This document shows, in pieces, positions 38,173 to 44,211 of a stretch of 64,000 bases of DNA. The DNA comes from Salpingoeca rosetta. Lineage: Eukaryota > Protista > Choanoflagellata. Position 1 is the first letter of the stretch. The number at the start of each line of letters is the position of its first letter. The stretch spans positions 418,311-482,310 of the forward strand of contig JAWQFM010000026.1 in assembly GCA_033442325.1 (NCBI GenBank), in the 5' to 3' direction. Below the pieces are notes generated by a model. The model saw only the letters and a program-made list of their open reading frames with translations, did no database searches and was not told the DNA's origin. Both the position numbers and the translations under genes were made by a program.

Positions 38173-41100
38173 ATGACCTCAGCTACGATGAGGATCATGC
38201 AGCGGCGCGGGCTTGCCCGGCCTATCCAATTGGTGGCCCTGCTACTCGGCCTCGTGTTGGCCGGTTCGCGCCTTCAGCTCGTTGCTGCCAGCAGCGCGTG
38301 TGCCATGTACGGCGCAAACCAACAGGCCTGCCTCTCCGATCCAAACTGCAAGCTCTCTGGGACCTGTTCCCCAGCGGAACTCAGTTGCGCCGGTGGTCTC
38401 CCCATCCTGTGTGAGCTTTTGGCCGGTTGCCGATGGGACCTCAACCAGGGCTGCTACGTTGACGCGCGCCAATGCAACGCCATCACGGTATGTGCGTTTG
38501 TGTATGAATGTGTGTGTGTGTGTGTGTGTGTTCGTATGCGCTATTGTGTATTTTTGCGTGAGTGTGTTCGTGTGTTGTACGTCTGTAAAGACAGTAATAA
38601 GTGCCACCTTGCTCTTGAGGTGCCCTCTGCTCATGTCTTACCCCCCCCCCCCCCAACACACACACACATTACACCATCACAGACGGAGTACGAGTGCACC
38701 AAAAACTCGCTGTGCGACTGGCAGCCAACGTGCACGGATCGCTATGCATTTCTCCCCGCACCGCCAGCACCGCCAGCACCGCCAGCACCACCGGGCCCGA
38801 TTTCACCGGCATGCCACCTTTACAGCGGCGATTACGATGCGTGCATGAGTGACCCAAGGTGCGAGGCTACCCTGCACTGCGGCAGCGCTTTGCAGTGCCA
38901 GCACAACGATGAGGTGGCCTGCATGAGCGAGCCAGGCTGCCTGTGGGACGAACTGGGCCTCTGCCACCTCGTTGACGACGTCTGCTCCTTGTTCCTGGTC
39001 AGTCCATTCGGTCTGTCGTTATCCCATAAGGGGGTGGCGAGCCTATGAGGGGGTGCGAACGCTGTTACTTTGACCACCCTCCTGCCCCAACTACCGAAGT
39101 TGCTCTGCACATGCTCAACACACACACACATGTGCGCGCTCACTCACTCAGTCACTCACTCACACGTGCGCGCGCACACACACACACTCTCTCTCTTCCC
39201 TTCCCACTCACTTACTCACTCACACGTGCACGCTCACACACACACACACACACTCTCTCTCTCTCTCTCTCTTCCCTTCCCACACACACACTCTCTCTTT
39301 CTCTGTGAGTAGATTCGCGACCTGTGCTCCATCAATCCAGTGTGCAAGTGGTTCTCCATGTGTCGCCCCGTACCGCGACCACCAGCGCCACCAACACCAC
39401 CAGCCACCCGCCCACCACAAACAACAACACCATCAAGGCCACCGACGCCACCGCCACCACCATCGTGCCGCTCAGCCTACCGCAAGCAGGATTGCCCCAA
39501 TCTGTGTGCACACCGCCGCTGCCTCGCACACCCATCAGCCACGTGCGTGGTGGAGAACTGCGGCGTGTGTGCGGCCCACTTCTACGATCGCCGCCAGCCA
39601 GCGTACGACAGCCGCGGACAGCCGATTCCCGTCGACTGCACGCCCACAGACCGCTGCACAGGCAACTGCCGCCGCGATTACGAGGCGTGCGAGCGCTACG
39701 GCCCTTGCAGAGAGGCCCTGTACCGCCTGTATGACGCACGCAGCACATATGCCGGCTGCAACTACGCCTGCTACCAGAACATCGCACCAAACCAGGACTA
39801 CCATGCACGTGCCATGTTTGACGCGCTGTACTCGTGCCTTGGTGCGTGCGACGGACACGCGGGCAGGGGCCACCCACCCAACCCCAACAACAACGGCAAC
39901 AACAACGGCAACCATGGCCCACCCGCGTATCACCCTGGCGTGTGCAGCCGGCCGCCGGCAACGGGGCCATGTGAGGCCGCCATCCCGCGCTGGTACTTCA
40001 ACCCGCGCTCGCAGCAGTGCGAGCACTTCACGTACGGCGGCTGCGGCGGCAACGGCAACAACTTCGAGACCAAGCAGGCGTGCGAGCAGCGCTGTGCGGT
40101 GGGCGCGTGCTGCACCCGACGAATCGTGCACGGGGATGGCAAGGCGTACGGGTACGACCGGAACGGCTACGACCGCGACGGTTATGATCGCAACGGTGTT
40201 GCCCGAGATGGGGAAACGCACCGCCCACGCTCGCACGCCCGCTTCTCCCGCGACACGTACAACGAGCACGGCCAGGACGAGCGCGGGTACGACGCGCGTG
40301 GCTGTGACGGCGCCGGATACGATGTCCGCGGATACGACGACACGTACGCACGCGACGGCCAGCAGTACACGTACACGCGCGAACAGCAGTACGACGAGGA
40401 CGGGCTGGACCGCACCGGCGTCGACAAGCACGGGTGCGATGAGGACGGCTATTCCTACGACGGGTACTATTCCAAGGCAGAATTCTCCTGCCGCCGCCTC
40501 ACACGTTCGCAGTGCCAGGCACTCGAGCAGCCGGAGCAAGGGGTGGAGGTGGTGTCTTTTGCCCAGGGCAGGGCATGCGCGGAGCGCCATTGCGGCAACC
40601 CCAAGTGGGAGGCGCCACGCCAGTGCGTGTACGGCGGCAAGGCGTACGCGTACGGGCAGACGTTCACCTACGGCTGCCAGTCATGCTTTTGCGCAACAGA
40701 CGGCACTGTGTCGTGCCAGTGCACCGTGCAGCCGCGCCGTGAGATTCGCGATCTCACCCCGCAGGAGGTGACGGCGTTCATTGGCGCCGTCAACATGCTG
40801 TACCAGAGCGGCACGTGGACGTCGCTGGCGGAGGTCCACCTCAATGCAGCGCCACAGGCGCACGGCAACCCGCGCTTCCTGCCCTGGCACCGGGAGTTCC
40901 TGAGCCAGGTCGAGATGGCGCTGCGGGAGGTGAGCGGCAACTGCGACCTCGCCATCCCCTACTGGGACTGGACAATTGACGCCATGTCGCCAGAGACGTC
41001 GCCCGTGTGGAACATTGTTGGCGGGAACGGCAACGCCGCAGACTCGTGCATTGTCACGGGGCCCTTTGCCCACTTTTCGCCCTGCATTGAGCGCGACTGG

Positions 41101-44100
41101 GACGCGGGCTGGGCAATCCCGTCGTTTGACGACGTCGCCGCCGTGCTTGCAAGCACGTCCTTCATCGATATGGCCGCCAACTTGGAGGCCCTGCACGGCG
41201 ACCTGCACATGTTCGTCGGCGGCACCATGATCACATACATGTCCCCGTACGACCCCGTCTTCATCATGCACCACGCCTTTGTTGACAAGCTGTGGGATGA
41301 CTGGCAGACGGAGCTGGGCAACGGCCTGCAGTACCCGCAGAGCCTGCTGCACACCACCCTCGACCCCTTCCCGCGCACGCCCGCCGATGTGCTGGACAGC
41401 GAGGCCCAGCTGTGTGTCACCTACCTCCCGCCGGGCGAGAACCCGCCCTGCGACGCCACGGCCTTTGGCGGCACACACGACACGGACGGCTACCACGCGG
41501 GCACCCCGCCCCCGCGCTACAACCGCGATGGTTACGATCGCGACGGCTACGACGTGTACGGGCGCGACCGTTACGGGCGCGACCGCAGCGGGCAGTACGT
41601 CACCGTCGACGCGAGCGAGAACGACGCGTACCCACCGTCCATGTACGGGTTTGATGCGCGCGGGTACGACGCGCACGGCTTTGATGCGCAGGGCCTGGAC
41701 GAGCGCGGGTGCGGCGTCGGCGGCGGCCACCCGCTGTACATGCGCGACGTGTACCGCATGCAGCGCGGCGTGTATGATGCAATCATTGCACGTCGCTTCC
41801 AGCGCAACCAGCGCACGTGTCGGCCGCGCCGCCCGCTGCCGCCGTGGTGGCGCGAGATGAACTGGATGGAGCGCGATGATGCCTACGGCCAGCGCGTGCA
41901 CACCCACCAGCAGCAGGTGCAGTCCGAGTACAACCGCAACGCCGGGCGCTCGTACCGCCACCAATACGACCGCCGACCACACGCGCACGTGCGTCACGAC
42001 ATGTGTTTCAGCAACGGCGACTACCTGCACTGGCCCGGATACAACGGCCACAGCGGCGATGACGACGACGGCCAGTGGGTGTACGGTGACGCGCACCAGT
42101 GCCCGCCCGGCCAGACACATGTGCAGTGCTTTGCCAATCCCTGCGACAACGCGGTGTGCCCCGGCGACAGCACCGCCATCTGTCGCGCCAACACGTGCGG
42201 CGGCTGCAAGGCGGAGTTCTACACCCCAGATGGGCGGCGTGCGCGCTGCTACGGTGATGGCACTTGCGGTGCTGCCGCGTGCCGCTACAACCCCTGCGCA
42301 CAGGCCACCTGCCCAGCCAACCCGAACGCCGTGTGCGAGCCGGACGCGTGCAGGAGCTGCAAGCCCGTGTGGACAGACCCGTACTCAGGACAGCGCGTGC
42401 AGTGCGAGCCAGGCGACCCGTGCGAGAAGCATGGGCATTCGCCCGTGTGCTGCAAAGACGGCAAGACGTACGATAACGCGTGCTACGCGGAACGCGCGGG
42501 AACGCACCCTGTCTATGGAGGCAAGTGTGTGCGTTGTGAGGAAAAGTGCGAGAAGGACTACGACAGTGATGATGCCTGGGGCGACGACGATGATGACATG
42601 CACCACCACTCACATCCAGACAAGTATTACGACGGCCACCAGCATGGCCATGGTCGCCACCGCCGCCACCGCAGGAGGGTGTGCGGCGCCGACGGCAAGA
42701 CATATCCTTCTGCGTGTCATGCGCGCTGCGCAGGCGTCAAGGTGGCGTACAGAGGCGCGTGCCAGACCATCCCCAGGACGTGCGACGACGTAAACTTCTT
42801 CACAGCAAGGGTATGTTGCTTGTGTGTGTGTGTGTGTGTGTGTGTGTGTGTGTGTGTGTGTGTGTGTGTGTGTGTGTGTGTGTGTGTGTGTGCGTGCGTG
42901 TGTGTGTGTGTGTGTGTGTGTGTGGAATGCGTTTGCATGTGTTTGCATGTATATGTGTTCGCATGTATATGTGTTTGCATGTATGTGTGTGTGTATGCAT
43001 GTGTGTATGCATGAGTGTGTGTATGCATGCGCGTGTGTTTCGCACTCGTGTGCGTTTGTCTGTGTGTGTGGATGTTGGTACAAGCGTGGACGTTTGCCAC
43101 AATGGCGTGTCTCACCTTTCCCGTGGCCTTGCGGCGACGCCCCATGCTTGCGTGTGCGTGTCAGGACGAGGTGCGCCAGTACGTGTGCAATACGCAGGCG
43201 CGGTGCATGGACAACGAACCGCGAGGGCCAGACAACAGCTGCTACTGGGACGCAGAGACGCGCCGCTGCGGATGCCAGCCATCCGACCTCATTTGCGTGG
43301 CACCATTGCAGACGTGTGTTGTGTGCTGTGACATTGACCTGCGCCTGTGCCTGTCCCTCGACGACCTCGACATCCTGTCGTGCTGGCGCGCGTTTGTGCA
43401 GTGCAAGGTGGACTGCCAGCTGAACATTCTGGGCATTGTGGAGCTGGACCTGCAGGTGCAGCTGCGCCTGGCGCTGCTTGGGTCGCCGTCCATGCTTGAC
43501 TCGCGCCAGCTGAAGGACGCCCTTGTGCTGTCGATTGGGCTGCCTGGCCTGAGCCACGACCACGTGGATGTGCTTGATGCAGTCACGTCCCTCATTGGCC
43601 TGGATGACGGCCGGCACAGGCGCGCAGACGAGATGGTGGGCGGTGAGCAGCATGACAGCGCGCTCCTCGGCGCCAGCAACGGGCCGGTTGGTGGCGTGGC
43701 AGATGGGGTGGAGCTGTTGCTTGGCGTGCTGACTGACGATCCCGTGGCCGTCATCTCGCAGGTGCAGCAGGCCCTGACAGACGGCACGCTGCTGGAGCAG
43801 ATCACCTTGCTCGCAGGCAGCACAGATGTCAGGAACACCTCCAACGTGGTGCTCACGGCCGAGCCAACCGTGATTGATGTGCGCACGTCATCGTCGACAG
43901 CGCCAGCGCCCCCGCGAACAACACAGCCGCACACGACTGCACAGCCGCCAGGGCGAGCGCCAAACGGCGAGGACAGCACCACCAAACCGCCGTCGTCATC
44001 GCCTCGTGGCAGCGGCAGCGGGGGCAATGGCGGCCTGCCACTTGCAGCGATTGTGGGCGCCGTTATTGGCGGCCTTGCTCTTGTGGCCATCGTTGTGTTT

Positions 44101-44211
44101 GCAGTCGTGGCTGCCAGGCGGCGATCTGGTGGCGGCAGTGGCACTGGTGGACATGACGGCAGTGGCGGTGGTCATCAGGCTGTTTCACGCAGTGGGCCCA
44201 CCACCATCTAA
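38173..44211 (+). CDS. Membrane-anchored multidomain tyrosinase (type-3 copper protein); exons 38173-38487, 38683-38997, 39313-42810, 43165-44211
   Basis: Signal peptide; Cys-rich repeats and Pro-rich linkers; Kunitz domain ([20 protein letters not shown]...[13 protein letters not shown]...C, about 39943-40095); GYD repeats; VWC-like ([14 protein letters not shown]...CQSCFC); tyrosinase with CuA His at 40837/40861/40888 (FLPWHR) and CuB HGDLH at 41194/41206 plus [12 protein letters not shown]; Kazal-like domains ([13 protein letters not shown]); TM at about 44035-44115. All three introns are phase-0 GT-AG. Confidence 0.92.

Follow-up and report, generated by a model that had tools for sequence, protein, structure and literature searches.

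A candidate surface tyrosinase of Salpingoeca rosetta within a cassette shared with animal kielin/chordin-like proteins

Main

We analysed a 64,000-nucleotide stretch of the genome of the choanoflagellate Salpingoeca rosetta (assembly GCA_033442325.1, contig JAWQFM010000026.1, positions 418,311 to 482,310 of the forward strand; hereafter the window, whose numbering is used throughout) and describe a four-exon gene at 38173–44211 on the + strand. On its sequence, the locus is a real, functional gene for a type I membrane protein, in which a tyrosinase core lies between two arrays of the pentad GYDxx. We hold with moderate confidence that the product is a functional type-3 copper phenol oxidase of the cell surface, built into an ancient cassette of which the GYD arrays are structural parts, and that it cures the theca or the attachment matrix. 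A preliminary description, made from the letters of the window, had read the locus as a tanning or adhesion module of a probable unicellular relative of animals, with enzyme, tyrosine-rich substrate and protease shield encoded in cis; the organism is indeed such a relative.

Copper site and catalytic core

The catalytic core matches the tyrosinase family PF00264 at 112.7 bits against a cut-off of 22.6 (E 4.3e-32). All six copper-ligand histidines are present (H719, H727 and H736 at CuA; H838, H842 and H864 at CuB) and align with the ligands of hemocyanin units and bacterial tyrosinases, and the waterkeeper Glu is kept three residues ahead of HisB1. The core, its ligand codons and the helices that close the tyrosinase body lie as follows.

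40726–41439, + strand: tyrosinase catalytic core, residues 682–919
40837, 40861 and 40888, + strand: starts of the CuA ligand codons
41194, 41206 and 41272, + strand: starts of the CuB ligand codons
41737–41940, + strand: closing C-terminal helices of the tyrosinase body, residues 1019–1086, with a CRP..PLP.WW motif conserved in the paralogs

An AlphaFold2 model of the 643-residue module (residues 470–1112), built on a 144-row alignment (A2), has the four-helix-bundle dicopper fold (Foldseek E 1e-13). We regard the ectodomain as containing a type-3 copper phenol oxidase that looks competent for catalysis.

Short bacterial tyrosinases (Streptomyces castaneoglobisporus 1WX2, Priestia megaterium 3NM8) are the best matches of the core (sequence E 1e-28) and likewise lack the thioether Cys; 1WX2 superposes on the model with Z 27.8 and a root-mean-square deviation of 1.6 Å, at 36% identity over 228 residues. 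They differ in a HisA1–HisA2 spacing of 16–18, against 8 here, and in carrying Asn rather than Gly at HisB1+1. In contrast to them, this core lacks a caddie protein and forms part of a membrane protein that has several domains and GYD arrays.

Vertebrate TYR/TYRP1 (gamma subclass of Aguilera 2013; type g in PMC11803259) resemble the product of this gene in having a signal peptide, a Cys-rich module before the core, a single C-terminal transmembrane (TM) helix and a short cytoplasmic tail. TYRP1, however, aligns only at the CuB stretch (E 1.7e-11, where bacterial tyrosinases reach 1e-28), and type g has 16–24 residues between HisA1 and HisA2 (PMC11803259). We therefore rejected membership in the metazoan TYR/TYRP membrane tyrosinases; as the core falls outside that clade, membrane anchoring arose independently. 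In an earlier survey, which did not include S. rosetta, type-3 copper proteins were found neither in Monosiga nor in Capsaspora, and membrane-bound forms were regarded as exclusive to metazoans (Aguilera 2013, PMC3658974).

The tyrosinases that cure animal matrices (mussel and tubeworm adhesives, nematode ShK-tyrosinases, mollusc shell) are, like this protein, secreted type-3 copper oxidases fused to small Cys-rich modules, and share with it the short HisA1–HisA2 spacing of polyphenol oxidase (PPO) types a–f; among ESM Atlas shapes, those of nematode ShK-tyrosinases and of mollusc tyrosinases come nearest. Those enzymes act on Tyr-rich matrix proteins, but the substrates are separate proteins, and the enzymes have no GYD arrays, no Kunitz or Kazal domains and no membrane anchor.

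A cassette shared with animal kielin/chordin-like proteins

An exhaustive profile-free protein search with residues 470–1112 as query returned matches that were full-length over query residues 1–640. They came from the choanoflagellates Hartaetosiga balthica and Salpingoeca urceolata and from bilaterian kielin/chordin-like proteins of Lingula, Argonauta, Patella, Limulus, Macrobrachium, a crinoid, Ptychodera, amphioxus, a shark and teleosts. Among the animal proteins, including Lingula XP_013412584.1, Hemiscyllium XP_060698749.1, Limulus XP_022244270.1 and Branchiostoma C3YUQ0, matches reach E 1e-97 to 1e-165 over about 500–540 residues, and the shared block is collinear: Kunitz domain, a small domain opening with a GACC motif, GYD array, beta module, tyrosinase fold, GYD array, closing helices and Cys-rich module.

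We read the cassette as an ancient unit of about 640–800 amino acids (aa), which runs from a Kunitz domain through the GACC domain and its GYD array to a Cys-rich beta module and the tyrosinase core, whose fold takes up a second array, and then on to the closing helices and Cys-rich modules. The choanoflagellate enzyme block is, in this comparison, homologous to a decayed block in the front part of bilaterian kielin/chordin-like proteins. There a Kunitz domain stands before the cassette, and the Cys-rich module seen here comes after it, then VWC arrays and a VWD domain. The animal proteins differ in that they are secreted and very large, have a TSPN-like N-terminus, numerous VWC repeats and a VWD domain, and lack both TM helix and Kazal domains; some carry two cassettes. 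Support in a core-only tree (FastTree) was 98 for the choanoflagellate clade, 100 for the animal one and weak (54) for the 34 rows taken jointly.

Copper ligands and flanks have had different fates. Six of six ligands are retained in this gene and most choanoflagellate copies, against one to three of six in every animal copy; two to three of the histidines are lost in the S. rosetta paralog annotated as 'mantle protein 9' (P0001) and in the H. balthica copy. In the flanks, choanoflagellates and animals share 59 columns (22 Gly, 18 aromatic, 19 Asp/Asn) that reach ≥70% conservation in both groups, in register. The aromatic pentad position is Tyr in 58 and Phe in 14 cases (81% Tyr) in the six-His choanoflagellate copies, 110 to 89 (55%) in animals and 3 to 5 in the decayed H. 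balthica copy.

In the kielin/chordin-like proteins of Ptychodera, Lingula and Argonauta (P0043, P0044, P0046) two cassettes stand in tandem, the first without the N-side GYD array and the second with both, all with decayed copper sites. Tyrosinase matches of >3000 aa with kielin/chordin-like domains have been remarked on in passing (PMC11667028). Our literature search found no paper joining Salpingoeca with tyrosinase, and the supplements of PMC11934334 and PMC7971027 gave no match.

GYD arrays and predicted structure

The motif [YF][DN]xxG occurs 14 times in the protein, against 1.36 ± 1.16 expected (2000 shuffles, maximum 7). Its matches cluster at 40150–40473 and about 41515–41685, either side of the catalytic core, in agreement with the preliminary description. 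The two arrays, which contain 12–14% Tyr, 16–17% Gly and 17–18% Asp, have the following extents.

40150–40473, + strand: N-side GYDxx pentad array, residues 490–597, looping out between two strands of a small Cys-containing domain, which opens with the conserved GACC motif
41497–41733, + strand: C-side GYDxx pentad array, residues 939–1017, an insertion within the tyrosinase fold

The known repeat families Pentapeptide (PF00805) and RHS/YD (PF05593) gave no match in exon 3 at E ≤ 1. With only seven sequences, AlphaFold2 returned an unusable model (predicted local distance difference test, pLDDT, 39.5); with the 144 rows, pLDDT rose to 86.6 at a predicted template modelling score (pTM) of 0.90, and both arrays lie within one compact body. 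By part, pLDDT is 74–89 in the N-side array (module residues 20–128), 52–80 in the C-side array and 89–98 in the closing helices. The N-side array is modelled nearly without regular secondary structure, isolated bridges excepted, and leaves and rejoins the small domain between strands 4–12 and 130–138. The alignments of longer tyrosinases and of hemocyanin units extend over model residues 211 to about 620, across the C-side array, which places that array inside the tyrosinase fold. On this model, the likeliest reading of both arrays is as ordered structural excursions of the cassette rather than free substrate tails.

A fold search across the PDB returned nothing for module residues 1–172 (Z ≤ 3.3), which, for so long a model, is no proof of a new fold. 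A complex prediction of the N-side array against the rest scored 0.00, with the alignment unused and the partner fold uncertain, and is evidence neither way.

Pentads of this kind also occur outside tyrosinases. Metagenomic UvrD-like helicases (P0026, P0028, P0034) carry about 60 tandem G-[YF]-[DN]-x-x pentads N-terminal to a UvrD/viral helicase core, so the pentad can be a self-standing structural repeat. The helicase array (P0028:1–420) has no RHS_repeat or Pentapeptide match at E ≤ 0.01, and no Pfam family covers the arrays; a protein atlas search with the GYD stretch and the helicase array gave only sub-0.9 matches to unnamed clusters. The YDxxG turn motif occurs in Rhs/YD repeats as well. 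The helicase and choanozoan arrays could reflect convergence on a simple turn motif rather than homology.

Gene model and accessory domains

The gene model was read from six-frame open reading frames (ORFs) and the DNA itself. It runs from an ATG at 38173 to a stop at 44209–44211 and gives, after splicing, 1724 aa with no internal stop; all four exons are phase 0 and all three introns GT..AG. The preliminary description had placed one polypeptide here; position, strand and the single protein hold, though as four spliced exons and not one open frame.

38173–38487, + strand: exon 1, 105 aa, with the start codon, a signal-peptide-like hydrophobic stretch (residues 13–40) and the first Cys/Trp-rich module
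38488–38682, + strand: intron 1, 195 nucleotides (nt), GT..AG, (TG)n-rich, open in frame
38683–38997, + strand: exon 2, 105 aa, with a Pro-rich linker and the second Cys/Trp-rich module
38998–39312, + strand: intron 2, 315 nt, GT..AG, (CA)n/(CT)n-rich
39313–42810, + strand: exon 3, 1166 aa, with the entire Kunitz-GYD-tyrosinase-GYD-Kazal part
42811–43164, + strand: intron 3, 354 nt, GT..AG, with a long (TG)n
43165–44211, + strand: exon 4, 348 aa and stop, with a Cys-rich stretch, a juxtamembrane domain without known family, a Ser/Thr/Pro stalk, the TM helix and a 31-aa cytoplasmic tail

The splice model is supported by homology, since in a global alignment to the annotated paralog P0001 all three exon junctions are collinear without junction gaps, and since Cys spacing is identical in both N-terminal Cys modules, across junctions 1 and 2. 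The intron lengths are all multiples of three, with (TG)n/(CA)n microsatellites throughout, and intron 1 lacks an in-frame stop, so that exon 1, intron 1 and exon 2 can be read as a single 291-aa ORF. In sequencing runs of 19–21 million letters, the share of query words was 0.83, which equals the exonic share; this hints at RNA contigs that span the entire mRNA, the kind of run being a guess, and we do not count it as evidence.

Hydropathy gives a signal-peptide-like N-terminus and a single TM helix at residues 1667–1693 (44035–44115), followed by the tail. The signal peptide, Kunitz domain, six-His tyrosinase, Kazal domains and C-terminal TM helix of the preliminary description were thus all recovered; its VWC domain was not. 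Outside the core and arrays, the accessory modules are as follows.

39940–40095, + strand: Kunitz/BPTI domain, residues 420–471 (PF00014, E 3.3e-21, profile positions 1–52 of 53, six-Cys pattern present)
40618–40728, + strand: small Cys-rich beta module, the former 'VWC', with beta hairpins in the AlphaFold2 model (module residues 178–216)
42097–42405, + strand: two Cys-rich modules with the pattern C..P.A.C....CG.C...F/W, of a kind that follows the cassette in animal kielin/chordin-like proteins as well
42421–42762, + strand: two Kazal-type domains (Kazal_2, E 4e-10, 40.1 bits against a cut-off of 22.8, in two stretches of the isolated C-terminal part of exon 3)

The VWC label was dropped for 40618–40728, where PF00093 gave no match at E ≤ 1 in exon 3 or at E ≤ 10 in the isolated segment; Pacifastin (18.8 bits) and FnI_RECK (18.0 bits) both fell below cut-off, and the family is uncertain. 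A third copy of the C..P.A.C....CG.C...F/W module lies at 39466–39639, and these modules have no Pfam match. Exon 4 likewise had no Pfam match, and a protein search gave no homolog of 191–609 aa.

The Kunitz P1 residue, directly after GPC (GPC-E-AAI), is Glu in this gene, Lys in P0002 and P0003 and Asp in P0001. The domain thus lacks the basic P1 of trypsin-type inhibitors, trypsin-type inhibition by this copy is doubtful, and the proposed protease shield loses ground with it. A His/Asp-rich insert (42556–42678) that ends in the polybasic RHRRHRRR takes the place of the second Kazal domain's N-terminal loop and is missing from P0001. This insert may bind metal (copper loading?), serve as a furin-type cleavage site for release of the ectodomain, or do both.

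A paralog family under uneven constraint

The 55.4-Mb S. rosetta genome contains six tyrosinase loci. The best protein matches of this gene are five S. rosetta proteins: 'mantle protein 9' (P0001), 'protease inhibitor' (P0002), PTSG_11341, PTSG_11343 and PTSG_12389+PTSG_12390. They have the same architecture from the Kunitz domain through the TM anchor. Identity to P0001 is 62% over 1642 aligned residues, rising to 77% within the module; the other paralogs are about 50% identical to this copy. This copy differs from them in its contig, in having the two Cys/Trp modules in separate exons, in the Kunitz P1 Glu and in the polybasic insert of the second Kazal domain.

The closest paralog, P0001 (contig C21, near 1252860), has lost HisA2 (to Tyr) and HisB2 (to Arg), and this gene keeps all six ligands. 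In a relative-rate test, for which six further choanoflagellate copies formed the outgroup, conserved core sites showed 5 changes specific to the lineage of this gene and 21 specific to that of P0001 (p = 0.0025), which argues that this copy is under constraint. The same test on the two flanks gave 0 against 1 and 1 against 1, so constraint on the GYD flanks persists while the core decays. This copy is probably the conservative, active one of the sister pair. P0001, with its decaying core and intact GYD flanks, looks like a pseudo-enzyme in the making.

Expression of the annotated paralogs

We took expression from the supplement of Fairclough et al. 2013 (PMC4054682), which compares attached (thecate) cells, swimmers and colonies in fragments per kilobase per million (FPKM). 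Two annotated paralogs stand 13- to 45-fold above colonies in substrate-attached thecate cells.

PTSG_12389: attached 22.7, 189.5 and 151.6; swimmers 35.3; colonies 0.5–6.3; log2 attached/colony 5.5; P 7.8e-24
PTSG_06045 (Kunitz, tyrosinase and Kazal): attached 6.6, 38.2 and 29.0; swimmers 8.5; colonies 0.8–3.6; log2 attached/colony 3.75; P 1.8e-13

The more likely identity of PTSG_06045 is P0002. Among the upstream ORFs that we scanned, no adhesion G-protein-coupled receptor fitting the PTSG_06045 neighbourhood was present, and this gene has no assigned PTSG id. Additional file 11 of PMC4054682 is captioned 'upregulated in colonial cells', but its header (log2Fold Attach/Colony, Attach/Swim) and its values are those of the attached list.

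The top of the same list also includes Duox (PTSG_06098), the DuoxA maturation factor (PTSG_12394), prolyl 4-hydroxylase (P4H), and collagen-repeat and vWA proteins. Together with the tyrosinase paralogs, these genes may form an oxidative matrix toolkit. A role in curing theca or matrix is plausible for the family, because two paralogs are thecate-up and the Duox, P4H, collagen-repeat and vWA genes share their list; at the family level, there is reasonable support for a surface oxidase with a task in curing the thecate coat.

Neighbouring genes

Upstream of the tyrosinase gene, at 28954–31965 on the − strand, a 1003-aa ORF carries three 'Bacterial surface protein, Ig-like' domains (PF16403, E 2.3e-43). 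In a eukaryotic genome, this ORF is possibly an old gene transfer, or the family may be wider than its name. The convergent neighbour at 44738–50370 (− strand) is a large gene, which closes with a protein kinase domain (Pkinase, E 3.9e-18).

Discussion

We favour, at moderate confidence, a surface oxidase whose arrays are structural and whose task is to cure the theca or attachment matrix. The protein would be displayed on the cell surface, mainly by thecate cells, as with the annotated paralogs, and would use O2 to turn phenolic groups into quinones; the phenolic substrates could be protein Tyr or 3,4-dihydroxyphenylalanine (DOPA), or small catechols of the secreted coat. The quinones would cross-link and harden the theca or attachment matrix, and the Kunitz and Kazal modules would bind or restrain proteases or matrix partners. 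Of the tanning module in the preliminary description, the surface-anchored oxidase with an intact metal site stands, as does, at the family level, the link to the theca through thecate-up paralogs; the supply of its own substrate in cis has weakened.

Several observations weigh against this interpretation. The core has Gly at HisB1+1, no thioether Cys and a HisA1–HisA2 spacing of 8. That spacing fits PPO types a–f (mollusc, cnidarian, oomycete, zoopagomycete and fungal short PPOs), and the sole characterised type among them, type f, is inactive on tyrosine (PMC11803259). The predicted order of the arrays rests on the 144-row alignment, in which only about 24 rows span the flanks. Neither exon 3 nor exon 4 found a self-match in a collection of 5.8 billion proteins, though five same-genome paralogs were found; on that ground the sixth copy seems absent from public protein sets, and this gene may be a sixth family member missing from the public S. 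rosetta annotation. Thecate-up genes total 1,410, so membership of the list is not very specific, and we infer the expression and theca role of this copy from its annotated paralogs. We considered taking Gly at HisB1+1 as a mark of 'catechol oxidase only' and dropped it, since HisB1+1 and the thioether do not settle mono- versus diphenolase activity (PMC8049008). By the same markers, the Tyr-to-DOPA step that the preliminary description required is no more than possible.

That description took the GYD tyrosines to be a built-in substrate, turned in cis or on neighbouring molecules into DOPA or quinones, by which the protein would cross-link itself into an adhesive or matrix. We consider this unlikely, though it has points in its favour: the arrays, at 12–14% Tyr and rich in Gly, Asp and Arg, bear some resemblance to mussel foot proteins, expression of paralogs is raised in thecate cells, and the Tyr share is higher in the six-His copies (81%) than in animals (55%) or H. 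balthica (3:5), a difference with Fisher p = 1e-4 that amounts to about two independent contrasts. Against this, the 59 in-register columns persist in animal proteins that cannot bind copper, and the arrays persist in P0001 with its decaying core; Tyr/Phe exchange is tolerated at the pentad aromatic position (about 55:45 in animals); AlphaFold2 predicts the arrays ordered and packed into one body; bacterial UvrD-like helicases have long N-terminal arrays without any tyrosinase domain; and the sequence markers do not establish monophenolase activity. A reading that joins both views, in which the arrays are an undescribed folded turn-stack domain, the surface tyrosines of the choanoflagellate copies serve in addition as DOPA/quinone handles of an auto-tanning enzyme welded into the theca, and a pre-animal cassette lost catalysis in bilaterians and was reused in kielin/chordin-like proteins, strikes us as decidedly speculative.

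Two further alternatives concern what the core acts on, if anything. A surface catechol oxidase for small soluble phenolics, yielding antibacterial quinones or a melanin-like pigment or wall coating, detoxifying prey-derived phenols or handling copper and oxygen, is improbable in our judgement. The Gly at HisB1+1, the missing thioether and the short spacing resemble fungal short PPOs such as AoCO4 (4j3p; model match Z 25.6), a group whose characterised members are catechol oxidases or o-methoxy phenolases, and S. rosetta eats bacteria; the Kunitz, Kazal and Cys-rich matrix-type modules and the thecate bias of the paralogs nevertheless point to a secreted coat, and sequence markers of activity type are unreliable (PMC8049008). 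Least probable of all, and very much so, is a non-catalytic surface scaffold or ligand binder like the animal kielin/chordin-like relatives, with the tyrosinase fold as a structural platform only. The cassette persists, despite lost copper ligands, in every animal copy and in two from choanoflagellates (P0001, P0041), which indicates that it has a function independent of catalysis; this copy, however, keeps six of six histidines and the waterkeeper Glu, with four times fewer core changes than its sister P0001.

Type-3 copper oxidases are a known kind of enzyme; new are the undescribed, conserved GYD-array cassette and its deep link to kielin/chordin-like proteins. S. rosetta has six membrane-anchored tyrosinases, of a lineage distinct from the animal membrane forms, and the pair of an intact gene and the decaying P0001 makes flank constraint separable from catalytic constraint. 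The GYD repeat fold, conserved and uncharacterised, awaits a structure. For the choanoflagellate, the family offers a candidate oxidative-curing step in theca building, alongside Duox and P4H, and a live enzyme in a genetically tractable organism would give a route to the former role of an enigmatic animal cassette.

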